NCBI GenBank assembly: GCA_965113315.1
Contig: OZ220363.1
Strand: one strand, 5' to 3'
Source of the DNA: Podarcis vaucheri
Taxonomy: Eukaryota
DNA length: 64,000 bases
The stretch's first letter is position 1. Each line of letters starts with the position of its first letter. Shown here in pieces: positions 1-22,900 of this stretch. A program made the translations under genes and the position numbers. The notes under the pieces are model-generated. The model saw only the letters and a list, made by a program, of their open reading frames with translations. It did not search any database and was not told the origin of the DNA.

Positions 1-70
1 GAAATGAGCGCCACATCCCATAGTCACCTTTGACTGGACTTAACCGTCCAGGAGTACTTTACCTTTACTT
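1..70 (+). mobile_element. 3' end of a Sauria SINE
   Basis: ATGAGCGCC...GACTGGACTTAA...CAGG followed by the (CTTTAC)n tail, as in the copies at 16.5 and 45.3 kb. Confidence 0.7.
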
Positions 71-753
71 AATTATACTCTAATAGCAAAACTGCATTGA
101 GAAGTGAGATGATCGCAAGAGAACAGAGAAGATTTGAAACTTCCTTCCAACACAATTTCTGCTCACAGAAATTCTTTTCTGTGGGAGAGGCTTATCCTGT
201 CTACTTTAGAGTCAGCCACAGATGTGCGAAGAACCTTCCCTTGTCAAGTTGAGAAACAGGTGTTAGTGCAACGTTAAAATTTGCATAATCAGTTTTTACT
301 TAAAAGTGCGAGCATCACAGTCAGACACGTTAGACCTGAAACTCCATGCAATAATGAATATTGTGTCACTTGGATAAGTAGATTAATTTGCTTATTGTGA
401 AGGAAAGCTTGGGAGTTTACAAAATGAAGGCTACCGGAGGCTGTTAGGAAAGCACAGTTCCTTCCTCTGCATCCCAACCCTTATGCACACCAAAGATTTG
501 AAAGCAAAGTATTTTGTCTTCATGAATTCTGATCATAATGACTGTTGAGTTTTGATCCAAACAGCATTGCTTTACAAATGCATCTGTGGTCCTGGGTTGA
601 GGCATTTAAGTTCAGAGGGCAAAAATTTGCCTTAGACCATAGGGCAAGCTCATTCCGGACCAGCTGCCATAACTCGGGGGGGGGGGCTTTCATTTTTGTT
701 TGCCTAGTTTGTGTCTCTGAGTGGCCTCTCTATCTCTTGCAACATCTTTCCAG

Positions 754-886
754 AAAACACACAAAAAACATCTTCCCGATTGGGTAACTCTCAATGTGAT
801 GACTCAGCTGAAGCAGCTGAAAGATTTCAGCTTTGAATTCCTCTTTGGGATCCACAAACGGGTGGAAAAAGCTCGTTTGCAGGGTG
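754..886 (+). CDS. ACP2: ACP2 coding exon (133 bp)
   Basis: ttccag|AAAACA...GGTG|gtaagt; [44 protein letters not shown]. Confidence 0.93.
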
Positions 887-2660
887 GTAAGTGAAAGAAT
901 ATGGAAGGCAGGTTGGGGAGGAGTGGAGGAGCATTCACTCACTGGTCAAGAACTAGGTTCTGATAGTTTGTTCTGTTTCTGCAGGGGTCCTTCTGTCTCA
1001 AATAAGGAAAAACCTTACTCTTGCTGCAAATGCCTCCACACCTCGCCACTTCAAAATGCTAATGTACTCAGCAGTAAGTTTGTTTCTGGGAGCTGTGCTT
1101 GCCTTCTCATTATTACCATCTTGTGAACTAAACAAAAAAAAAAAAACAGCTGCAGCTTCCAGCAGTTTCTCCTGCTCTGTGAAAGGAATAAGCAAATTAG
1201 TACTTCCGTCTCTTTGCAGCAACTACGGATGCTACAAAAAAAACCCAGATGCTCTCACAAGCAACAGAGAACTTTGTCACTTAGCCTCTCCTTGTAGCGC
1301 AGTTCCCAATGTTCCGCTTAGTTTATTTATTTACTTACTAAATGTGTTAGTCACTTTATCTTGTCCAGGGCAACCCAAAGCAACTTACAACCAAACAGGG
1401 TGTTGAAATAGGTGCCAGCCTTTTTTCCACGGCCCTGGAGCCCCTTTCTTAGTCTTCCTACCAGCCCCTTGGGAATCTCTGCCAATCTGCCTTCTTCTGA
1501 AATGTGGTTTTAAGTCCCCTTCCATATGCACAAAGGAGATGTTCACATTTTTCTTCCTCTTTCTCAGCATGACACCACCCTTGTGGCACTGCAGATGGCT
1601 CTGGATGTTTACAGCGGGAGGCAACCACCATATGCCTCGTGTCATATATTTGAGCTGTATCAGGAGGATGATGGGTGAGGGCTTCATGAAGCATATCAAT
1701 CAAAGGAAATGGTATTCAGAGGCAATAATCTATCAGCCTGCTGTACCTTAACTTTTGTCCACATATTCACGGGAGATGAAATGAAGTAAAAGTAAGACTT
1801 GCAATCTTAAGATGAAGAAGGGTTTATACTTCTCTCCCCTGTGGTGATGGAGTTACCAGTGAATATATTAGTAAAGCCTTACGTCTGATATGACTGTGAT
1901 AGAATTACAAGAAGGAATATCAACAGTACTTTTATGCATCTCTGAATTTGAGAACACCTGACAAAGCACATATAGTATATTCCTGTTAACAGTCCTGTTT
2001 GTAACCCAAGGTACCACTGTACTTTTATGAGTTATTTGTAACTAACATCCAGTTTAATTTTTAGTTTTTGCCCCTTGCTCAAAAACAAGGAGGGACAACC
2101 CAGCATTTGTTAATTTCTAGCATTCCTCATGCATCTTAGGGTGGAAGGGGGTTGTACGATGATTCAGGGCTTGATTCCAGTAGAAAACATGATATGAAGA
2201 TGGACGGCAAATAATCAGAATCTCAGTTCCTCTCTTCCCTGTTTTGCTCCTAGTAACTTTTCAGTGGAGATGTTCTTTCGGAATGAGAGTGGGAAGGAGC
2301 CTTACCCAGTGCAGCTGCCTGGCTGTGCACAGCGTTGTCCCCTGCTGAATTTCCTGCAACTCACTGAGCCTGTTACTCCACAGGACTGGAAACAAGAATG
2401 TCAGATAGCAAGCACCATGAAAGACACAGGTGAGTGGAGGCTGTTCCAGTAGATAAGCCAAAGAAGGACTGAAGTGATTTCAAGTGCCATAAGCATATTT
2501 TTTTCCCACTTCACCCTCTGCAGAACTTATTGTGGTTTTGGCTGTCTGTGGATCCATCCTCTTCCTGCTTATTATCCTGCTCCTGACAGTACTCTTCCGT
2601 TCCAAGTCCCAGCCTCCTGGCTACCGGCACGTTTCCAATGAAGGAGAGGAACAGCCTTGA
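754..2660 (+). CDS. ACP2: Lysosomal acid phosphatase, 3' part; exons 754-886, 985-1073, 1568-1674, 2254-2429, 2524-2660; 5' exons lie upstream of the window
   Basis: Spliced translation [10 protein letters not shown]...[19 protein letters not shown]...[20 protein letters not shown]...[20 protein letters not shown]...[19 protein letters not shown]...[15 protein letters not shown]. All introns GT-AG with matching phases. Catalytic HD motif, TM helix and GYRHV lysosomal signal present. Confidence 0.96.
985..1073 (+). CDS. ACP2: ACP2 coding exon (89 bp)
   Basis: ctgcag|GGGTCC...TCAGCA|gtaagt; (G)[29 protein letters not shown]. Confidence 0.93.
1568..1674 (+). CDS. ACP2: ACP2 coding exon with catalytic HD motif (107 bp)
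   Basis: tctcag|CATGAC...GATGG|gtgagg; [35 protein letters not shown](G). Confidence 0.95.
2254..2429 (+). CDS. ACP2: ACP2 penultimate coding exon (176 bp)
   Basis: tcctag|TAACTT...ACAG|gtgagt; [58 protein letters not shown]. Confidence 0.95.
2524..2660 (+). CDS. ACP2: ACP2 last coding exon: TM helix and cytoplasmic tail
   Basis: ctgcag|AACTT...; [47 protein letters not shown] at 2658-2660. Confidence 0.95.
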
Positions 2661-4757: not shown

Positions 4758-5237
4758 ACCTGCATATATTGCATACGTCTGGCAACACGTCATGCAATAT
4801 AATTCTGCAAAAAAGGGGGGGGGGAATGGCCAACTCGGTTTGCAGCTGTCAGCATCTATAGTTTCCCCATTGCTGATCACCCAACTGCATGGCACGGTTC
4901 CTGCAGGGCAGGATGCAAACACAGAGGCAAATGAAGTCCAGCACAATTGGTTGATTACTATTACATGTATTTCCTGCAAGCCAGGTAAAAAATCAAGAGG
5001 GGCAAGATTTAAAGTTGTCTGCTTTGGTACAAATTGAGGGCATAAAAGGTTTCTGTGATTTATTGTTTGAGTACCTGATTGTTGTCTTTGTAATTCACTT
5101 GGATAATTTTCTTAGCCTCCCCCTCCCCCCCCCCCAATTAAAAACCAAGTGGAGAAAATCAAGACTGGACTCTTGTTCTTTCTTCCTCTGAGCAGGTTTT
5201 AGAGCTGGACCAAAAGGGGGGGAGGGTGCAATTGCAA

Positions 5238-5870: not shown

Positions 5871-6495
5871 GAATATATCTCAATTTTGTAAATGAGGTGA
5901 ACAAAACAAAATCCCAATAGCAACTGCTGCAATATGAAACCCAAGCCACCTGCCTTAGTCTCAAACAGCCTCTCCACGAAGTCTGTACTTCTATACCTAG
6001 GCCACAAGCAGTTTATCAATCAAATAAGTGCTTCTAGCTTAACAGTTGCCTCACAACATACCTGTTTTGAGGAAGCAGTGCTGGGAAAGAACCCTTGAGA
6101 AAGGAAATTCTCACATTTTGAACTGGCATGGGAAGACAAACCCAGGTTGCTCAATACACTGGAAGGGGAAATAGTGTGTTCTGAAAATGCAAACTGAACT
6201 GTCAGCATAGCCCCGTTCTCTGCATTGTGCCATGTCCCAGACAGTTAAAAATCTGCAAGTGTGCACAAATATGGTGCTCCTTTAATTGGGTCAAATGCAT
6301 GTGAGTATTGAGCGTGGACCCACTCTTTGCTCTTAATAAAGGATTTTGAAACATACCACCCGTGATCCAGCAACATAACATCCATGATCCAGAGAAGCTG
6401 GGTTAGGGTAAGGGCTTGCTTCTCTCTGAAGCCACCATTGCCTACCATGCCTGCACAGGCTTTGCTCTAAATGAACACCACATATGCTTGCCTGA

Positions 6496-6752: not shown

Positions 6753-9700
6753 CTGCCAGAAAAAAAAGTGACAATTTTAGGAATTCTGCTTTGGAAAGCA
6801 AAATAAAAAGTACATTCTAAGAGCTCTGACCATCACCAGCGAAAATAAAGGAATTGTTCACATGATGCTGATACAAATGCTTTGCTCATATACTATGCAA
6901 AAGAATGAAACTTTACTATCTCTCCTCTTACCCCCATCTCTCTTCCCACTTTCTTTCCCGCCAAACCCCTATTGCCTGTAACAGTAATGTCTCACTCTGA
7001 ATGTGACTGGCCTGTATGAAGAAATATCTGACTTGAAAACAGAGACTCTCTATGTACTATTGTTACCCAAGTACATATTTTAAATGATGATGATAATAAT
7101 ACACCCAAGAGCTCAGACATTGTCTGCCAGACCTGTTTACTTCCCAGCTACTAAGGTTTAATGGAGTGATTGGCTTTTGATGTTAGATCTACAAAGTCTC
7201 ATTACAGGAACAGAATCCAAAGTAGTAGCTAATAATCGGGTATATCAGTAATTCATCTTTCCCAACACTTAACAGTACCTGTAAGTGAGACAGGTATGCC
7301 TGAGTATTTTTTTTATTTCATATTTTCAAACACCTCTTAACACTTTATAAACCTCTTTAACACTTAAGACAGTTTCTTAGTGGTTTATAAAATTGTGTGT
7401 GTGTATGTGCCCCTGCAATTATGTGTAGTATTTATATGGAGAGCGAGAGAGAGCAGACAAGGAAACTGAGAAACAACATTAAAATACAATACAATAAAAT
7501 CCCCCAAAACAAACACACAAAGTGGCAAATTATAAAAGCATCTTAAGAATCAATTATCCCTTCCCCCTTCCTTGACTCACAATATACAGCATTCATCTCA
7601 ATGACACACACACATTACATCCGAATTCTGTCTTACATCCACTCAAATCATACATCTGCTGCTCATTCAGTATCACTCATTCCATTCTATTCTCACACAT
7701 CCACCCGCTCACACACACAATCCACACACTAACTCCCACAGTATCTCCCACTCAGTCACTAGTCATCATCACCAATCACACTGTGCACTCAGCTAAAAAC
7801 GTACTGCAAAAACACCAGAAGACAATGAAGCTATAGCCTGACTGAATCGTAGAAAATAACAAAACTAACTGCAACCCATTAATCACACAGATTTACTGCT
7901 CCTAACAGCAATCTGCCTGTCACTCAGGTTGCTGCCTCCCACCCAAGATTCCCCCCACGCCTCCTTTCTTCTCGCCAAGGAATCCTGATACGCCATTTAC
8001 TTATCACCTGGTGTTTCTCCCCTGTCCCTTGCTCTCTTGCATGCCTTTATGATGTTGCCAAATTAACTCCAAGCAAGGAAGGGTCCACTTAAGATATGAA
8101 GCAGACTGCTGGAAACTAGCAAAAGTGTACAGGTTCAGTCCACAATCCTTGGTACAGACAAAGGCACTGGTATACTGGTACTGCTAAAAGGTTTATTTGT
8201 CCCAGGTGCTAGGTAAATTTACTTAAAGAATCCATATAACTGCCAAGGCTAATTTATTATGGGCCTTCTGTCTTTTGCATTACTGCCTAAAAGGCCACTA
8301 GATGGCAGCAGTACTCTCCTTTCAATAGACTGTTCCACCCTATCATTTCTAAGCTAAAGAACAAAGTAGTCAAGGGTCAAAATACCGTATTTTTCCGTGT
8401 ATAAGACGATGCTTTTTGTTGTTTTTTAAAAAAGGCAAAAATTGGGTGTCAGCTTATACATAGATAATGAATGCAGAGGGGGGACATGTGATTAATGGCA
8501 GCAGCAAGCAGGAGATTGGCAGCGGTGATTGGTGGTTGTGGCAAGGCCTGCTGGCGATTAGCTGCAGCAATTGGGCAGGCAATCAGTGGCTGTGGCGAGG
8601 CGGGTAGGCAATTGGCGGCTACAGCAAGTGGGCGGGTGGGCTGTTGGCGGCTGCGAGCAGGCAGACAATTGGCGGCTGCAGTGAGGTGTGTGATCGGCAG
8701 TGACTGTGGCAAGCGATCGGCAGTGGCGGGCAGGCGGGCGAACGATTGGCAGGAGTGACCTCCCCCACCCCCCAAAAAAGCTAAATAACTTAATTTCTTA
8801 ATTAAGTGTGTATCTGAAGAAGTGTGCATGCACACGAAAGCTCATACCAAGAACTAACTTAGTTGGTCTTTAAGGTGCTACTGGAAGGGATTTTTTTATT
8901 TTAATTGCTTAATTTTGGGTTAAAAAAAAATAGGGGTCGTCTTATACATGGGGGGCATCTTATACATGGAAAAATACGGTAGGTGTGACTGTGACAGCAA
9001 GAGATTGCATGTGGAAAGACACAAAACTGGCCCGTTCACATGCTAAGCAGGGACTGGTATCTTTAGCAGCAAAAGGATCCCACAGGAATGGGGTGATGAA
9101 CTCTCCTCAACCTCATATTTTCTCTGTTTCTGGCTTGCTTCTGGTAACAAAGCCAAGAAGGTGGCTGGAAGGTAAGGCATGGGAAAGGTTCTGCACCACT
9201 CGCTCTTGTGCTTTTATTGTTAAAGCACCACTCATTCTTCTGTGTATGTAAACAGTCTTAAAATACAACTTTTGTAGTTGTTGAGGAAAGGTAGGATAAA
9301 AATGTCCCAAATGAACATCTAGAAAGTGTTATAGGTATAGCCACAAAATCCCACCCCATTGTCAGCATGCTTTTATCTGGAGAGTGCCTGATTGCTTTTA
9401 TCTGGTGAGAACAGTGGTCCATTATCAAATGTGTAAGATTAAACCAACCACTCACCCATTCCAGAAGCCAGGGTGTCTCCCATAGGGTTAAACTTATTGA
9501 GCTGCAAATGTAAACACAATAATGCATTGTAACCACGTCGGTTGTTCACTTAACATCATCAATCAAATAAAAAACACCAGAACATTCTGGACAGAGAAAT
9601 GCCCAGCACTGGATGTGGAAAGAGTTTTGCACAAATCAGCAGAGCTTTGAATAGAAGGTCTCTCCATCTCCCACCTATCAGTCTATCACGAGATGCGTAT

Positions 9701-12700: not shown

Positions 12701-15700
12701 ATTAAAGAGATGGTAAACAATTCTTGTTACACTTTATTTATGAACACAATTCAGACATTAAGAATAAGATTAAGAATAAGATTAAGATTAAGAATAAGTG
12801 TTGCATAATATATATTTTTAACATGGAAAATAATAACTAAGCCACCACCTCTATTCTTCTCTGTCGTTGTTTTTATCCTGTAGGGCTAACATTACTATTA
12901 AAACTTTGATTTAAATTTTAGCAAGTCTATAGACACACTCAGTATAGACACACTTCATCTTTTTGACAAGACATGTGAAACTATGACAGGAATAGGACTA
13001 GTGTTTGTTTTTTTCCACATATCTTCCAATTTCCTTCACAACTTAGGCCAAGGTTTGAAGGCACCTTATAATGTGCTTGTACAGTAGTACCTCGGGTTAC
13101 AGACGCTTCAGGTTACAGACTCCACTAACCCAGAAATACTACCTTGAGTTAAGAACTTTGCTTCAGGATGAGAACAGAAATCGTGTGGCAGCAGCAGGAG
13201 GCCCCATTAGCTAAAGGGGTACCTCAGGTTAAGAACAGTTTCAAGTTAAGAACGAATTAAGTTCTTAACCTGAGGTACCACTGTATCTCATTTTATCCAA
13301 ACAATCCTGTGAGGCAGCAGGACTGGCATTGACCTTTACAAGGCCAACAGCTGGTACAATGAATGCAAGGTTGAAAGACAAAGGCATGTGGCACTGACCT
13401 GAAGCACGCACAAGCCAAGAATGGTTAGGTGGCAGAGTATAAGCCATGAGCCACTTTGCTTTCTTACCTGCATTAACGGGTTTATCATGTGGAAGTACAT
13501 GAAGAGAACTTGACTTGTCCTTAATGTTTCTCAGATCCCATATCTTTACTGTCTGATCCACAGAGGCTGTAGCTAAGAGCCAATCACAGTGAGAATTGAA
13601 TTCCACGTGAGTTACTTTCTTTTTGTGCAGTTTCAGGTTCCATACCTGCAGTGGATAAAACAAAAGCCGAAATGCATTACAACTACAGAGCAAGAGATTT
13701 AGACATCAAACATACTTTTCTAGGAGATGGTAAAACCTCTTTAAAAAAAATAATGATATGGAAGACAGGAGAATATATGCTTGTATTTCTAAATCAGCCT
13801 AATAAAGACAATTCCAAAACTCTACCAGAGATCAAAGATTAATCTAAATAAGGAACTTCCAGGTTCTCCTCCTGGGGAATATGATCTCTGTAGTAAAGGG
13901 AACTTTTGGTTCTCCAGATGTTGTAATACTACAACTCCCGTAATCCTTGATCAGTGGCCTTGCTGGCTGGGACTGATAGGAGTCCAAAATCATCCATGAT
14001 ATATATTCTAAGTCAGGGCAACATTAGGCAGATGTTAAAAATACCAAAAACCTATGTATGTCTGATCAAAGCAGGCTGTAAGGCAAAGAGGAGGGGCACA
14101 CTAACCTTTTCGCCCTCAGTACTGAGCAGAACTACGTTGCCCACATTATCACCTGTCGCCACAGTCCGGCAAGTTGCAGATACATCAACACTGCAGTACC
14201 AGAAACTAAAAAAGAAAGAAGTACAAATTCAGAATGTTCACCCCCTAGATGTACAACTAAGGTGGTTCTCTGTTCTTAGCAGAATGCAAAAACAGTATTT
14301 ATATAAATAATGGAATCACAGCTGCGCTGAACTGAACCCTAGTGGCATTCTGATGTGGGATCAGTGTTGGATTATTTATCAAGTAGTGTAACAAACCCAA
14401 CAGGCATCACTTGGAAAAACCAAGCACACTCTTTAAAACATTCACAATGTGTATCGCATCAGTTCTAAGTATTTGAAATGAACACTAATTTTAAGTGTTG
14501 GAAAAGGGGTAGATAAGTTTGGACGTCATGAAACACAGGAACCCAAAGCTAGCCCAAGACACTTCACTGCCTAATGTATAGGTCAAGATGGCTCACTACC
14601 ATCACACACACACTCCCATTCCATGGATACAGAAGCTGAGCAGACTGGCAGATGACTCTTATTTTCAGCACTGGGGGTGCGACAGCATCCACCACACTTC
14701 AGAGCAACAGGCTAGCTTAGGGGGCAGGAAATAGGGGCAGAAGGCAGACCTTGTGGCACACACTGCTCTTATAGGGAAATAGTTTAGGAGCTCAGAAAGT
14801 AGAGCAACGGCCTTCTACTACTGCCCTAAAACATCTGCCAACATATTCTGCCCAATGGTAGGGTTCGCCCTGCAAGTGTGAGAGCCAAGTCACACTTTCT
14901 GTGGCAGATGAGATTGCTTCTTATCTTTCACATGCCTTCCAGTGAACCTCCAGAATGCTTGAAAAAGAAACCCAGATCTAAACAAGCATTAGAATTCTAT
15001 ACATTCCTCTTTCTTTGAGCATATTGCATGCTACCTCCCAATACTAACTCCCAAACATGAGGTGCAATTTATATCTTCAAAAAGTTTCCCTTCCTGTATT
15101 ACTTTGTTTTAATGGGAGACAAGCAGCTGATAAATGTTCCTGCTATATGAAAGCAGACCTTATTGGCTCTGATGCACAGTCACACTTGCTCAGTTCGGGA
15201 CAATTAGGCAGTGTAAAAATAAAACCCCAGAACCTGTCTTGTTCACTCTTCTTTGAGCATGCGTGACATGGTTAGAGTGCTGCAGTTTGTAGAATTCCTA
15301 CTGAAAAAGTTGTTTGCCTTCTCTATGTGTCAGGTGTGCTATACAGGGTATGCTATGCACCCAAGGAAAGAGGGATTTCCAGCATCTCAACACTCCATCA
15401 AGCAAAACACTACTCAAGTGCTCATGCCCACGAAAAAGCCAAACTACTTCCATTTGCTATTATGCACAACAGTAATCGTATTCCAATCCACATGATCAGA
15501 AACGTATTGCCTCCAATAGGCCCAGGGAAACAGCCCAAGCAAATGCTAATAATCTGTCCTGGCACATTCAAAGGAAGGGTAAAGGAAATTTATGAGCTGA
15601 ACAACGACACTGCCGTTCTGACTCCTCACCAAACATCATGGAATTCATGATCACAGACTGGGGTGCGGGAGATCACTTGCGCTGGTCGGCCCTCAAGGTG

Positions 15701-18700
15701 CTGTAGACTAAGGGTGCCATCCCCTGAAGCCACATAAAGATTTGCCGACTCAAATGGGCTGAATTTCATGCCTCCAAGAGAGTCTCCTGGGCCTTTCTGG
15801 AACACAGATGGGAAGAGGAGAGGAATATGCCTAAGTTACTGAGGAAGGGTGGGAATAGGCAGTCAGCACAACCTGGCAGAAATGCACTGAGTTCAGGCTC
15901 TAGGTGAATTCACACCTACCTACTTAATGCTGAACATTGCACCTTGTACAGTACTAGCTCTGAACTAGTTAACTTCTCAGATGTTGCATGCAAATTTCTT
16001 TCAGAAGTTCCACTTCAAAAATGTTGAGAAGCTATACAATATCCTCTTCAAAAGCACCAAGCAATTTAAAAAAAACACTAAGAGAGAAACATTAAGCCAT
16101 CTGTGTGCTAGTAGACTGGTTTATCAAGCTCCTTCTTGCGGAACTATTAGTATTGACTTTCTACTCTTACATTCTTTAACACTTCCAGTACCTATTTAAA
16201 CATAGAGCAAACAAAGAATTTTGCAGAGCTAGGATAATTCTGAGGACAACATATAACATTATGTCTCAAGTCACGACACACAACCTCTGTCTTTAAACAA
16301 GTATAGTACTAAATATTCCCAACTGTGTATAGAAAACGCAAATAAGTTCTGCACCTTTATGATAAAGCCAGGCAACTTCCCACATATTAAAAAGTTCTCT
16401 TCAGCTACATTAAGGTTCCTCTTGTTCCAACTAAAGGATGTGAATGTGGCAACTGCAACTTGATATCCCTCCACACAATTGAAAAACCAAGAATAAATTG
16501 AACACTAGGGCTTGCTGATCAGAAGGTTGGCAGTTCGAATCCCCATGACGGGGTGAACTCCCGTTGGTTGGTCCCTGCTCCTGCCAACCTAGCAGTTCGA
16601 AAGCGTGTCAAAGTGCAAGTAGATAAATAGGTACCACTCTGGTGGGAAGGTAAATGGCGTTTCCGTGCGCTGCTCTGGTTCGCCAGAAGCAGCTTAGTCA
16701 TGCTGGCCACATGACCCGGAAGCTGTACGCCGGCTCCCTCGGCCAGTAAAGTGAGATGAGCGCCATAACCCCAGAGTCGGCCATGACTGGATCTAATGGT
16801 CAGGGGTCCCTTTACCTTTACTATTCCATCCTATTGAACCTCAGCACTGAAATTGTCCATTATATATTTCTAGGAAGGTATTCGTTCACAACCTCTCTGC
16901 AGCTGCATCCAGTGCATTGTTTATTTTACTTCTCAACAACCATTGGATCTTCTGGAGATTCCATAGCGTAGAGGAAAACTAATCTAACTCCATCAATCTT
17001 CGCTTTGCTGCATCAAAATGTGAAGACTTCACACAAAAACTTATGTCACATTTATTCCTTTACACAAGGACCTCCATCTGTGGAGGAGTATAAAAATATT
17101 ACATGAGGATATCCAAGCATGTGTCTGTTTTGCTTCTGATATATGCTTCAGATAACTACTGTGAGAATCAGATTCCTGATGCCTGAATTAGGAGGAAAAT
17201 AAAACACTCATGCAACCAAACCTACATTCAGGTCGACACAGATAAAAGTTTATTCACACATTCTTCCCAAAGCTGGTGTTAATATCAGTATCAGGACAAA
17301 GTAACATCAAATAAAGTGCTCAATGAAGTTTCAAAAGATCCTAAGATAGCTTAAGAACAAAAAATGTGAAACTGGTAAGCATTCAAAATGAACCCAAAAA
17401 CAAGGGATATGGTATCACAAGATGCTGACAAAATAAGGATGAAAAAGAAGAAGAAAATAAATCCTAATGTATCTCAGTCTATTGTCATTGAAGGCTTTCC
17501 TCAAGTGTCAAAATAAAAAGCAGCCTAGAGATCTCTGTTAACAGCATCGCTTATTCACAGCTGGCAACACAGGTGGATGCCACAATATTCAACAGACCTA
17601 TTGCGGCAAGAAAGTTTGTGAAGAGCCCACTTCATCAGATGCACTTCTTAAAGGTGCTACAAGGCTCTTTTTTGTGTTTGCTCATAGTCCGAAACACTGG
17701 TGGCCCAGAATAAATGTAAATTGTAATATTGAATGTGTATGTTTCATTTGTAAATATAATTCAAACAAGCTTAGGAACACAATAAAATAATTTCCACTCC
17801 TTTGTCACGTGCACAGGGGAGTTCCCAAACTACCAATCCCCTACCACATTTCCAACACAAATTTGTTCTGTTATGGCTCTTTATCTATCTATTCATTACA
17901 GTATGTTTGTTATTGCGCAGGTATATGTCACATTTACAGACAGATCATGTACACTTAAGGCCATAAATTCAATCTGATGCATATTTGGGAAATATATCTC
18001 TGCCAAATGAGAAAGAACCCTTTAGGCAAAGAGATAGGCTTCTGCAAAATGATTCACTATGTTTTCCATAGCGATATCAAATTGTACACTGTTTTGCTCC
18101 ACATTGTTTTTTTACTTATGTAACCTGCCTTAAGGCCCAGTTTCAGGGGGCTAGAAGATAAAGTACATGATTAAAGCAAATAGTAGCGATTCAAGAAGAG
18201 CAAATCATTCACACTCTGAGTGAATAACTCTGGTAAGACCAGGGTGAGGGCCGACCCATGCCGAAATTGCACCACTTCCTCTGTTTTGTTGCCTTCTAAT
18301 ACTAGAAGCAGTGAGAGGTGGGAAAAACTTTTATCACATCTTACTCCCAGTTGTCGGTACTGGTGAAGACTCGAATTGTATTTCCATTAAAATCCCGCAG
18401 GGCAGTAGTTCCAGCAACTGATGAAGTGTACAGCTCACTAGGGTTAAAAGGGTTAAACTTCATTCCTGTGATGGCCCCTCCAGTTCTCATCTATAATGAA
18501 CGGGATGAATAAAAACAGAAAGCCACTCAGAGATGAGGAAGAAGGAAAGTCCCTCTTGTTATCTCATCTAACACCAGTACAAGGCAGCATTCATCTTTAT
18601 GTGGCATTAGCCAAGCTGAACAAATATCCTCATAGAGGAGAAGTTTCCTCTGGCCAATACCATTTCTGTTAAATAACTGCCATGTTGAAGAGCAAGCCTG

Positions 18701-19939
18701 CAGAACTCCTGGCACCGTCTACATCTTGAGTGGCTTGGCTCAGCTTCTTCTCAAGGTTGCCACCATGAACTAAACTGTTGAAAGTCACCTACTCAACCTC
18801 TTTACAAGAATGGGTTGTTCTGTGAACAGTTGCTAAAGGACTGAACCTAAGGGTACCAGAGGTGGGAGCAGGGAAAGGGATAAAGGATAAGACTGCAGAC
18901 AAGTAATGTCCCAATGGCGGGAGGGTACTATATATGAAGAGTTTCAGGAGCTCAATTTCAGGGCTGAATTATTACCTTCTTGTGAGGATTTGGGAGGATA
19001 AAATGCAACATGGAGGTGATGCCAGGAAAGCTGTTCTGGATGATAAACAACAGCTTGGGAACTCTGAAACTTCCATATTCATTGTTGCCATAATACTCGC
19101 CCTTATTTTTGTTTGATAAAGGTGCAAAGGAAAGTCCAATGTCATGTTTCTGCCCAGAGTATTCGTCTTAGGCTTTTGTGAGCTTTTCTTTGGAATGCCT
19201 AAGACGATATTATTTTAAAAAATATTTGCTTGAATACAGACAGATATACAAATTATAGCAGCTCAGTATCCTTGGAGAAGACTTGGAATTCTCAAGGAAG
19301 CTATTTTCTGCCTCTGGGTTTGCTCACCCTTTAGAAAAGATGAAGTTCACTCCACAGATAAACACAAGTGTATTTTGCCAAGGAATTATTAACAATTCAA
19401 AGCAAGGCCGATGGAAAATATTATTTCATTTGCGGGGACCTCATTCCTTCAACTCAATGAAGTACTTTCACATCTAACAAAGCATGAAGCTGAAGTAAAG
19501 AGTTAAGACAAATAAAAAACCTCTCCAAATATGTATGTATTTTCTATTTCAGAGTAAAAATTATCTAACTCAAATATATAGCCAGATCATTCCCTTGCAT
19601 AGAAAGCTGGGAAATTACAACACAGATTTATCCAGTGCAATGGAGTTCTAACTAGAAGCCTTCATCATTAATCTACATACCGCTCTAACACAGAGCTTGC
19701 ATAGACACTGCATTCGATCTTCACAATGACTTACCCCTTTTATGAAGCAGCTTTTATTAAGCATTTCATAGTCCCAAAGGATGATGTCTCCACCTTTGGA
19801 GCCCACAGCAACTGTGCTGGGGTGTGTTGGGTGCCATTCCAAGCATGTAACCCTCCTGTCAAAGGGACTTGCTGTGCGGAACAGGCGGTACGAATAGAGG
19901 GAACGTACAAAGGGCACCTGAAGACACTGTTACAAAGAC

Positions 19940-19979
<40 letters not shown>

Positions 19980-22900
19980 GCCCTGCAATTCCCATAAACT
20001 CAAGTCTGTGCTACTCTTCCAACTACTGTATACTGCTAACAGGTTCAACTGTGGACCATACTACACTACATGCATCCATATGTATCTTCCCTCTAATTTT
20101 CTTTTTTAACAAAAAACAACCTGTAGATCAGGTGTGGATCAGGAAGCTTTTTGGCCAGATCTTCATCTCCCCACACCCTGCAGGCTAACTTTGATAGGTG
20201 AGTCAATGAGCTGTCAATCAGCTGATGTCATAATGATGTCATAATGTTGTCAACATGCATTTCTGCATCTAGATGATGCAAGCTTCACCAGAGGTACAAC
20301 AAGAGGAGCTGTGGAACTCTTTATCTACTCGTTTTTTCTACTTTAAATTGTTCCCCTCCCCAGCTGGGTTTTCTCCAGAAATGATAAGGGGAAAAGGAAT
20401 ATGGTGAGAAGATAAGCAACACGACAATGAGAAATTATTATCCTGTCCATACAGGGGCAAGAGTGAAAAGAAATGGTACTATGCATTTCCAGAATTAAAG
20501 GCTTACATTTGATGTGGTGGAGCAAAGGAAAAGTTTGTAGATAGCCATGGTTTAGCGTTGCATCTCATCATAGCCTTAATGCTATGAGCCTGAGCAAAGC
20601 ACTACAGTCACAAACTCCCCCCTTCTCCTCACCGCCTCCTGCATGGCTAAATCAGCAGGATTTACTTTAGCTTTTAAAGAATCCCAGCTTAGTTACAATT
20701 GGACCAAGGATGTTGTTTTTATAGAAACTCCAGTTAGCCTATCAAAACAGGCCAGCTTCATAATCCATGGTTTCGAGTTGACTTGTTATGAAACTTACTA
20801 GAGTTTTGTTTTAAACCAGGATTCCTGGTTCAAAAATAATGCTAAGCCAATATACTTTAAAAGTGGAACTATACTCTGCCAGTATCCCTCTCCCAATTGC
20901 ACAGGAGGAGGTGGATGGAGAGTCAGTCTTTCTCAAGCTCATTCTAGCTAAACCATCATTTAGCATTATGTGCAAATGCAACCAGAGTGTCATGCAGTCA
21001 GGTGGATTTTTAAAAAGGAAAGATCTACACATGGCTGCATTATGCATACTATAGAGGAGGGAACATAAACATGGGTCAAACAGCCAATAATAAAAGAACT
21101 GTAACTCTTTTCTCCTCCACACTACTATGCAGAGTATGCATTTAGATAGAAATAGAAACTGCAGGAACCTCAGGTGTTCGGCCAGTTTGTAAGGAAAAAC
21201 ACCTACCTTTCTGAGCTGTGTCCCAATAGCACCACCCAGCATATTCTGATGTAGATAATGGACAATGTTCTTCTGTGTCTCTCGCTGATGGAAGAACACT
21301 CCTGTTTTTCTGACCATGGATCCATGGAAAGCTTCTCCTGCCAGACAAAAGCAAAAGTTATATTACTACCTACTTACATGCTCACTTAGGACAGATTTCA
21401 GGTTTTTTTTATAAAAAAAAATGGACACATACCCCAAACTGGAGCCAGGTGCAATGAAACAAAAAAAAATACTTTAAAACAAATTCTAATCAGTTTTCAA
21501 AACAAGCCACTTCAAATCATGAGTGATAAGGCTGGCTTGTTAAATTAACCAGAGCCTATTTTAAACTGCAGTCTCTGGTTTAATTGTAATAACAAGCCAG
21601 GATTCTGTGAAAGCAAAATAAAACACTGCTGAAGTCTCTTGCTGAACATGTTGAAGGAGGTAGGGCGTATACAAGCCCAAGTTTGGGTTGGACTGATTCC
21701 AGCTTCTTACACATTTAATGCTAAACTACTACATGCAAAGTACTCCACTGGGCTCAATGAGGCTTACTCTCTGGTTAAGTATGAATAGCATTGCAGGTTA
21801 ACTCTCACTACACTAGACTAGGAGCAGCAAACTTTGGCAACCACTGGTTAGGTGGGCGTATAATGTTGAGTGGTTTAAGTTTCTGAGCTACTCCAACTCT
21901 TCAGTTGGCTGGGTGTTAAGCAAAAAAAAACACCAAAATAGCAGAGGGCAATGAGAAGACTATGCAAGGAAATAACAATGGCTGCAACAGGCCTGAAAAA
22001 AACAGAGGCTGTATTTTGCCCCCTTTCTGAACTGAAATAGGTTAGCAGTCAGTATAGCTCTACCAGGTTAAAAATGAGCTAAAAACTAAGGTAGCTGGAG
22101 ACATCATTCTTAAAGCACAGTGGAAGAAAATAAATATCGGCCCAGTTTAGGATAAAAGCACAATATTCCAGATACTTCCAAAAGAATGAGTACATAAACC
22201 CCAGCCAAGCCCCCCGGAGTTCCTGCAGAAACAGAATATTCCAGGTTTGTTCTGTAGCCTACAGAAAATGTGCAGAGCTATTGGCAGGCTGTTCTCAACA
22301 AACAAACCTGCTGACTCTTCATGGAAAAGTCTAAAAACACTGTTGTCCAGGGAGAATTTTGCTGAGCAACTCAGCTTGGGATTTGTTTTCGAACATTGGT
22401 TCTGTGTTTTGTGTTTAATTACCAGAGGCATCTACAGCAACACAGAATCTGACTGCAACATATCTAATCACCCCCAAAGCAAAGGAATACGGCATATTGC
22501 AATTTCTTAGGAGTCAGACGACAACAGTCCTCATCATGAGGTAGAAGCAGATCAAATGAAACTCTTGAAACATGTATTTTTGCAAGGAAGGGTCCATAAT
22601 AAAACAAAAGTGTTTCCTTAGTCAACCAAAAGGTGAGAATATTAAGGATGCAACCCCCATTCAAATAACAGCAAAACTCCCCACTGATTTTAACTGGCCT
22701 GGTAATAGTAGCATGACATAAAATGTCATAGTAGCATACATAAAAGGGGGCACAAACAGAGGTGTTGAGTGCTCCCCCATCCCTGGCAAGTACTTTTCTT
22801 ATAGTCAGTCTTACTTTAAACCAGAGATTTCCAAACTGTGTGCTGTGACACCGTAGTGTGCACTTTGTAGGTGTGTCGCGTGAACACTTCCTGCACTCTT

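Follow-up and report, generated by a model that had tools for sequence, protein, structure and literature searches.

The DDB2 gene of the lizard Podarcis vaucheri lies on the minus strand of the 64,000-nucleotide (nt) stretch of contig OZ220363.1 analyzed here (GenBank assembly GCA_965113315.1; hereafter the window). In our judgment it is highly probable that this gene carries two tandem, homologous, mutually exclusive versions of exon 4, designated 4A and 4B, which likely give two UV-DDB sensors with different lesion pockets. DDB2 is the first ultraviolet (UV) photolesion sensor in global-genome nucleotide excision repair, and xeroderma pigmentosum group E results when it is lost. The exons, their alternative use, their age, their conservation, and the mapping of their residues on a solved structure are shown by the data presented here. 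Under the explanation that we favor, each mature coding mRNA would hold exactly one of the two exons, and transcripts with both or neither would be frameshifted and presumably removed by nonsense-mediated decay. The exon duplication would predate the split between ray-finned fishes and tetrapods, with order, lengths, and phases kept since. Exon 4 would encode one WD40 blade, the one that contributes most of the listed residues around the flipped-out photodimer; 4A would build the pocket known from crystal structures, and 4B would build one with substitutions at two of its walls and a Cys/His loop inserted before the equivalent of zebrafish Trp239.

The exons were placed by means of open reading frame (ORF) fragments and direct reading of the window (Table 1). 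Both 4A and 4B are open, have no stop codon, and are bounded by AG and GT splice sites. Each is 3n+2 nt long, so the frame is lost, and a stop soon follows, whenever a transcript takes in both exons or omits both: when 4A and 4B are joined, 4B is read in the frame left by 4A as KAQETLLEA-stop, and exon 3 joined straight to exon 5 gives FLVLQC-stop. The codon split at the end of either copy is finished by the first base of exon 5, yielding Asp after 4A (GA+T) and Cys after 4B (TG+T). Exon 5 starts with T/TTC TGG TAC TGC (FWYC), and its Trp is the equivalent of zebrafish Trp239. The 4A and 4B peptides are 38% identical over 42 aligned residues. Searched against all Protein Data Bank (PDB) chains, both copies find zebrafish and human DDB2 (4A with E=1e-16 and E=2.5e-14, 4B with E=3.9e-5 and E=0.009, respectively), and both align to identical residues (115-164) of the zebrafish DDB2 chains. 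They are two homologous versions of DDB2 exon 4. The coordinates, peptides, splice signals, and frame arithmetic of an initial annotation made from the sequence were all exact when the window was re-read, and its statement that a full-length protein needs exactly one of the two exons agrees with the stops given above.

Splicing was read from Logan assembled contigs of four RNA-like public runs (X1, X5, X10, and X11), which come from four studies and bear three organism labels, over window positions 14040-19930. The segments that the joints in these contigs leave out begin and end with CT..AC in plus-strand orientation, equivalent to GT..AG in that of the gene, and the contigs therefore derive from spliced RNA. 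Joints 3-4A, 4A-5, 3-4B, and 4B-5 are all present in spliced contigs, as mutually exclusive use had led the initial annotation to expect, and each exon is spliced in, 4A in X5 and X10 and 4B in all four runs. Among the joints listed, transcripts carry 4A or 4B, one at a time. The spliced contigs of X1 and X11 contain 4B only; judged by crude contig depths, the ratio of 4A to 4B is about 1:1 in X5 and about 2:1 in favor of 4A in X10. In X1 the 4A region is covered solely by a long unspliced contig with a depth of 7.6, compared with a depth of 87 for the 4B contig, so 4B dominates in that run.

The pocket for the 6-4 photoproduct in zebrafish DDB2 consists of Pro191, Ile213, Trp236, and Trp239; it is shallow and hydrophobic, lies beside the flipped-out dimer, and makes no base-specific hydrogen bonds, and Gln372 and His373 belong to the inserted hairpin (PMC4264169). 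Window exon 7 contains the FQH motif of this hairpin. Its alignment to chain 3ei1_B, where the Gln and His of FQH have chain indices 298 and 299, set the numbering used here (residue = index + 74). Exon 4 supplies three of the four listed pocket residues (Pro191, Ile213, and Trp236). The solved DDB2 structures (zebrafish 3EI1 and 4A08; human 3EI4 and 6R8Y) represent the same gene and fold and share with the lizard both the FQH hairpin and the Trp of exon 5. Every DDB2 chain returned by the PDB searches, human or zebrafish, is of the 4A type, including the zebrafish protein that serves as the lesion-recognition model, in agreement with the statement on the human and zebrafish proteins in the initial annotation. 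Lizard 4B differs from these structures in having Gly for Ile213, Cys for Trp236, and an added C-x-H-x2-H-x2-C loop. 4B rewrites the lesion pocket and in addition has a Cys/His motif that is invariant. A functional consequence of the exchange is predicted; as judged by the mapped residues, the two isoforms would be expected to differ in lesion binding.

The loop arises from seven residues that are inserted in 4B after the Cys that replaces Trp236 and before the shared FWYC. Together with the Cys of the split codon, the insertion reads C-D-H-E-F-H-D-V-C. An alignment of 40 full-length 4B-type proteins, ranging from teleosts to birds, shows no variation at C214, H216, H219, and C222 (numbering of P0213, the Podarcis muralis 4B form). 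Four Cys/His residues at fixed spacing are the sequence signature of a zinc-knuckle-like loop, and the C-x-H-x2-H-x2-C loop may bind a metal or be redox-sensitive. An AlphaFold2 model was made of the 4B isoform (target P0213, with an alignment of 40 4B-type proteins). It is a confident propeller, with residues 100-460 mostly above a predicted local distance difference test (pLDDT) score of 85, and the Cys/His motif occupies a loop (residues 211-224; mean pLDDT approximately 82) between two strands. The top Foldseek matches of the model are zebrafish and human DDB2 chains (E=2.5e-49 and TM 0.93 relative to 4a08_B). According to this model, the 4B isoform is a DDB2 seven-bladed WD40 propeller.

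Homologs were sought with phmmer, using the 4B peptide against 1.84 billion representative proteins, and with three word-index searches. DDB2 proteins of the 4B type are found in dozens of teleosts (often labeled isoform X1), tarpon, arapaima, sturgeons, three salamanders, turtles, tuatara, Anolis, Pogona, Podarcis, and many birds including chicken; one cluster led by a falcon protein comprises 298 member sequences. A Gallus gallus UniProt entry (P0217) is of this type, as the initial annotation stated for the chicken reference protein. Proteins of the 4A type were recovered from frogs, gecko, birds, a turtle, the anchovy Coilia, the zebrafish PDB chain, and every mammal recovered. The automatic classification into 4A and 4B included primate proteins and the transcript-derived P0130 and P0160 (primate/human exon 4 peptide). 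No mammalian 4B-type protein appeared in any protein search, although a turtle query reached salamanders and fishes at approximately 60-68% identity, which suggests that 4B was lost in mammals.

In a maximum-likelihood tree built from 45 peptides of exon 4, the 4A and 4B types are separated with 97/91 support, and fishes and tetrapods are present in each of the two clades. Branching within the 4B clade tracks the species tree, with sturgeon followed by teleosts and then by salamanders and amniotes. Two mollusc DDB2 sequences fall on the 4A side, so that 4A looks like the ancestral form and 4B like the derived copy. As reconstructed from these peptides, the pair is no younger than the common ancestor that bony fishes share with land vertebrates.

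Genomic loci of other vertebrates were obtained from a scan of JGI metagenome contigs in which aligned 4B peptides served as the query; the vertebrate DNA in them presumably comes from the sampled animals. A bird-like locus (L001, with L002 the same) and a teleost-like locus (L004) both have exons of 146 and 167 nt with AG/GT sites, as in the lizard, and a pair of the same lengths in both contigs is far beyond chance. The ancient, retained duplication proposed in the initial annotation is upheld by this conservation of order and length and by the presence of fishes and tetrapods in both clades.

Lizard 4A is 85% identical in amino acids to the gecko and crane versions, and lizard 4B is 85% identical to those of turtle and tuatara, 74% to that of chicken, and 54-61% to those of ray-finned fishes. 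The values between the lizard and birds or turtles are comparable to those of the constitutive exon 5, which is 81-90% identical within sauropsids; exon 3 has 85.6% nucleotide identity between the lizard and the bird-like locus L001. Among close relatives, 4A has one non-synonymous and two synonymous changes and 4B has one of each, which are tiny counts. A blastn comparison of lizard and bird over 6 kb finds similarity only at the four exons and their adjoining flanks. The conserved flanks upstream of 4A and 4B extend two to three times further, approximately, than those of the constitutive exons, which span 18 nt (exon 3) and 27 nt (exon 5). Regulated alternative exons usually have longer conserved flanks. 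Both flanks fit regulation and are candidate splicing-regulatory elements, and the choice of exon may be regulated.

Table 1. Exons, spliced joints, conserved flanks, pocket positions, and comparison loci of DDB2. Positions are those of the window unless another reference is given; joints are written as the two window positions that are brought together.
Feature	Position	Strand	Description
Exon 3	19926-19735	minus	192 nt; phase 0 to 0; ends ...CFIKG; spliced joints leave from 19735
Exon 4A	18490-18345	minus	146 nt; phase 0 to 2; cattatag/ATGAGA...CTGGGA/gtaagat; "classical" version
Exon 4B	15796-15630	minus	167 nt; phase 0 to 2; tgttccag/AAAGGC...GTTTG/gtgagga; alternative version
Exon 5	14205-14106	minus	100 nt; ttttag/TTTCTGG...GAAAAG/gttagt; all joints enter at 14205
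Cys/His loop codons	15630-15655	minus	C-D-H-E-F-H-D-V plus 2 bases of the final Cys codon, finished by base 14205
Conserved flank upstream of 4A	18491-18550	minus	approximately 60 nt, including pyrimidine tract and AG; blastn block 18550-18339
Conserved flank upstream of 4B	15797-15847	minus	approximately 51 nt; blastn block 15847-15611
Joint 3-4A	18490>19735		contig depth X5 9.4, X10 19
Joint 4A-5	14205>18345		contig depth X5 9.4, X10 19
Joint 3-4B	15796>19735		contig depth X1 66.5, X5 9.2, X10 9.8
Joint 4B-5	14205>15630		contig depth X1 106.5, X5 4.4, X10 9.8, X11 10.2 (X11 with one extra letter)
Joint 3-5 (both copies skipped)	14205>19735		contig depth X10 25.1
Pro191	chain index 117		exon 4; lizard 4A Thr, lizard 4B Pro
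Ile213	chain index 139		exon 4; lizard 4A Val, lizard 4B Gly
Trp236	chain index 162		last full codon of exon 4A; lizard 4A Trp, lizard 4B Cys
Trp239	chain index 165		third residue of exon 5; Trp in both isoforms
Bird-like locus L001 (L002 same)	contig positions: exon 3 4854-5045; 4A 5906-6051; 4B 7794-7960; exon 5 approximately 9058-9156		
Teleost-like locus L004	contig positions: 4A 423-568; 4B 734-900		exons 165 nt apart
Short interspersed nuclear element (SINE)	16505-16820	minus	within the 4A-4B intron; squamate-type; very high repeat depth; not part of the mechanism

Several points weigh against the explanation that we favor. Human DDB2, although of the 4A type, has Ala, Met, and Ile at the positions of Pro191, Ile213, and Trp236, and these differences between human and zebrafish indicate that the pocket tolerates variation. 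The putative functional difference of 4B is read from residue mapping, and the modeled loop was read by pLDDT and secondary structure. No 4A-4B joint is among the joints listed for the assembled contigs of the four runs, but because nine further joints lie outside this listing and such contigs lose rare forms this is weak evidence. Each depth is one figure per assembled contig, which makes the 4A:4B ratios rough. The initial annotation described the pair as a switch; the 4A:4B mix does vary among the runs, but tissue and treatment are coded in these samples, so that the term is only partly borne out. Finally, the depth of the X10 contig that joins exon 3 to exon 5 exceeds that of either productive form, and unproductive splicing is therefore not negligible.

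The first of these points bears on an alternative that we consider improbable, although it fares better than the others, namely that the lesion pocket is functionally unchanged and that 4B alters contacts with nucleosomal DNA or histones, UV-DDB dimerization, or a partner, or serves as a disulfide or metal staple. In the model, the seven inserted residues form a surface loop that faces the DNA, and the pocket lacks base-specific hydrogen bonds and tolerates the substitutions between zebrafish and human 4A. However, Ile213 to Gly and Trp236 to Cys would take away two of the four named hydrophobic walls, and a pocket so altered could hardly be expected to accommodate lesions as before.

The X10 skip contig speaks for a different alternative, in which the two exons are functionally equivalent and the level of DDB2 is set, through nonsense-mediated decay, by the choice of splicing productively (one exon) or unproductively (none or both). 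Both exons being 3n+2 is also as expected, and the frameshifted skip product (FIKG-LLVLQC-stop) is represented by a 12-member cluster of transcript-derived bird proteins (P0167). Skipping of both exon 4 copies may be unproductive splicing that controls dosage. As a full account, however, dosage control is unlikely: equivalent exons would hardly have been conserved as two distinct sequences from a time before ray-finned fishes and tetrapods separated, the invariant C-x-H-x2-H-x2-C is found in one copy only, and the differences sit on listed pocket residues, not on neutral surface positions. Control by skipping is compatible with two sensors that differ in their pockets and does not replace that explanation.

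That one copy is a relic or splicing noise, rarely spliced in and without function, is very unlikely and largely refuted already, since, despite the 4B-only spliced contigs of X1 and X11, the mammals that manage with 4A alone, and an ORF that resembles a decaying 4B (P0013; SGDG to SEDN), the depths in X5 are similar (4A 9.4 and 4B 9.2), 4A is ahead in X10 (19 and 9.8), in both exons the open frame, the splice sites, and the exact length are kept, the lizard peptides are 74-85% identical to those of birds or turtles, the conserved upstream intron flanks are unusually long, 4B is still 54-61% identical to its counterparts in ray-finned fishes, and many transcript-derived and RefSeq proteins of each type exist.

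The 4B isoform is already present in RefSeq automated annotation. The Podarcis muralis entry P0213, titled "DNA damage-binding protein 2 isoform X1," represents the 4B form; the stretch of it that was compared, covering exons 3-4B-5-6, is identical to the window. This identity places the window in Podarcis or a very close relative, and the squamate-type SINE in the 4A-4B intron is in keeping with that. The surmise in the initial annotation that both isoforms might be listed automatically is thus partly borne out, for the 4B form. Deposited gene models of Columba (P0190 and P0191), Chelonia mydas (P0209), and Pitangus (P0212) chain 4A and 4B into one protein by means of invented linker residues, in the order 4A then 4B; these pigeon, green turtle, and great kiskadee models are wrong, and the exon pair is the source of the error. 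While isoforms are already listed by automated annotation, no literature description of the exon pair was found: full-text searches returned no paper on an alternative exon 4 of DDB2 within the literature searched, and the nearest match concerns loss of the entire DDB2 gene in pangolin and armadillo (PMC5865188). The searches also turned up no structure or assay of the 4B isoform.

Two Logan contigs depart from the usual arrangement. In a loach-like contig of 3110 nt (P0007), one frame runs from exon 3 through approximately 90 nt to a 4B-type exon, with no 4A between; either a cypriniform lineage has lost 4A or the contig is unusual. A contig of 5194 nt (P0013) has a 4B-like ORF in which VASGDGT has become VVSEDNT and LEG has become KEG, with C-G-H-E-Y-H-D-I kept, and may represent a decaying 4B in some lineage.

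Candidate mechanisms of mutual exclusion were considered and rejected. Twelve nt of the intron that follows 4A (18245-18256) are perfectly complementary to a segment within 4B (15684-15695) and could in principle pair with it in the RNA; this match is treated as chance because it is one of 15 inverted matches of at least 11 nt in 6 kb and because its intronic arm lies outside the blocks conserved between lizard and bird. Steric exclusion is ruled out by the length of the 4A-4B intron, which is 2548 nt in the lizard and 165 nt in the teleost-like contig, and incompatibility of major and minor (U12-type) splicing by the fact that all splice sites are ordinary GT-AG. Exclusive use is probably enforced by the incompatible frames of the two exons, with presumed decay of out-of-frame transcripts.

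The SINE in the 4A-4B intron draws enormous contig depth from all four transcriptomes. It is missing at this site in contigs from organisms A and B, which join 16500>16820 with GAAC between (X1 and X10), and it is therefore a lineage-specific or polymorphic insertion. A (CT)n microsatellite (approximately 19943-19990) lies directly upstream of the exon 3 acceptor region.

macroH2A1.1/1.2, PKM1/PKM2 exons 9/10, and FGFR2 IIIb/IIIc are vertebrate pairs of mutually exclusive exons that re-encode a ligand pocket. The DDB2 pair resembles them in that its exons are ancient, homologous, and arranged in tandem, have the same phase and similar lengths, and enter a transcript one at a time; as in those pairs, the swapped segment lines a binding site, and splicing would change specificity rather than the presence of the protein. 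Unlike those pairs, the DDB2 exons differ by 21 nt in length, and mammals appear to keep one copy. We know of no tissue pattern, regulator, or biochemical difference for the DDB2 pair. The human DDB2 exon-skipping variants D1-D4, reported as dominant-negative, likewise arise by alternative splicing around exons 4 and 5, but they delete propeller blades, whereas the choice between 4A and 4B swaps one blade for a homologous one and keeps the propeller full. In-frame isoforms without exons 4 and 5, in which FIKG is joined onward, are annotated in Carettochelys, Haemorhous, Pogona, Monodelphis, and Conger (P0168, P0169, P0170, P0171, and P0177); such isoforms would be short of approximately one propeller blade.

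The initial annotation was correct in its observation and in the core of its interpretation, and both hold across a much wider range than it could show. We propose, tentatively, that most non-mammalian jawed vertebrates could make a second UV-DDB in which a Cys/His loop, acting as a metal or redox switch, replaces half of the hydrophobic pocket and confers a different lesion spectrum or regulated on/off behavior, and that this form was lost in mammals. A practical warning for annotation is that pipelines may fuse both exons, as in the pigeon, green turtle, and great kiskadee models. If the proposal is true, the structural and biochemical picture of DDB2 covers one of two ancestral sensors. A second DDB2 form, whose age and conservation match those of the first, is encoded and expressed in fishes, salamanders, reptiles, and birds. 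Should the forms prove unlike in lesion preference, metal dependence, or regulation, UV repair in sun-exposed ectotherms and birds would have a level of control that has been overlooked, and why mammals gave up the second form would become a testable question.

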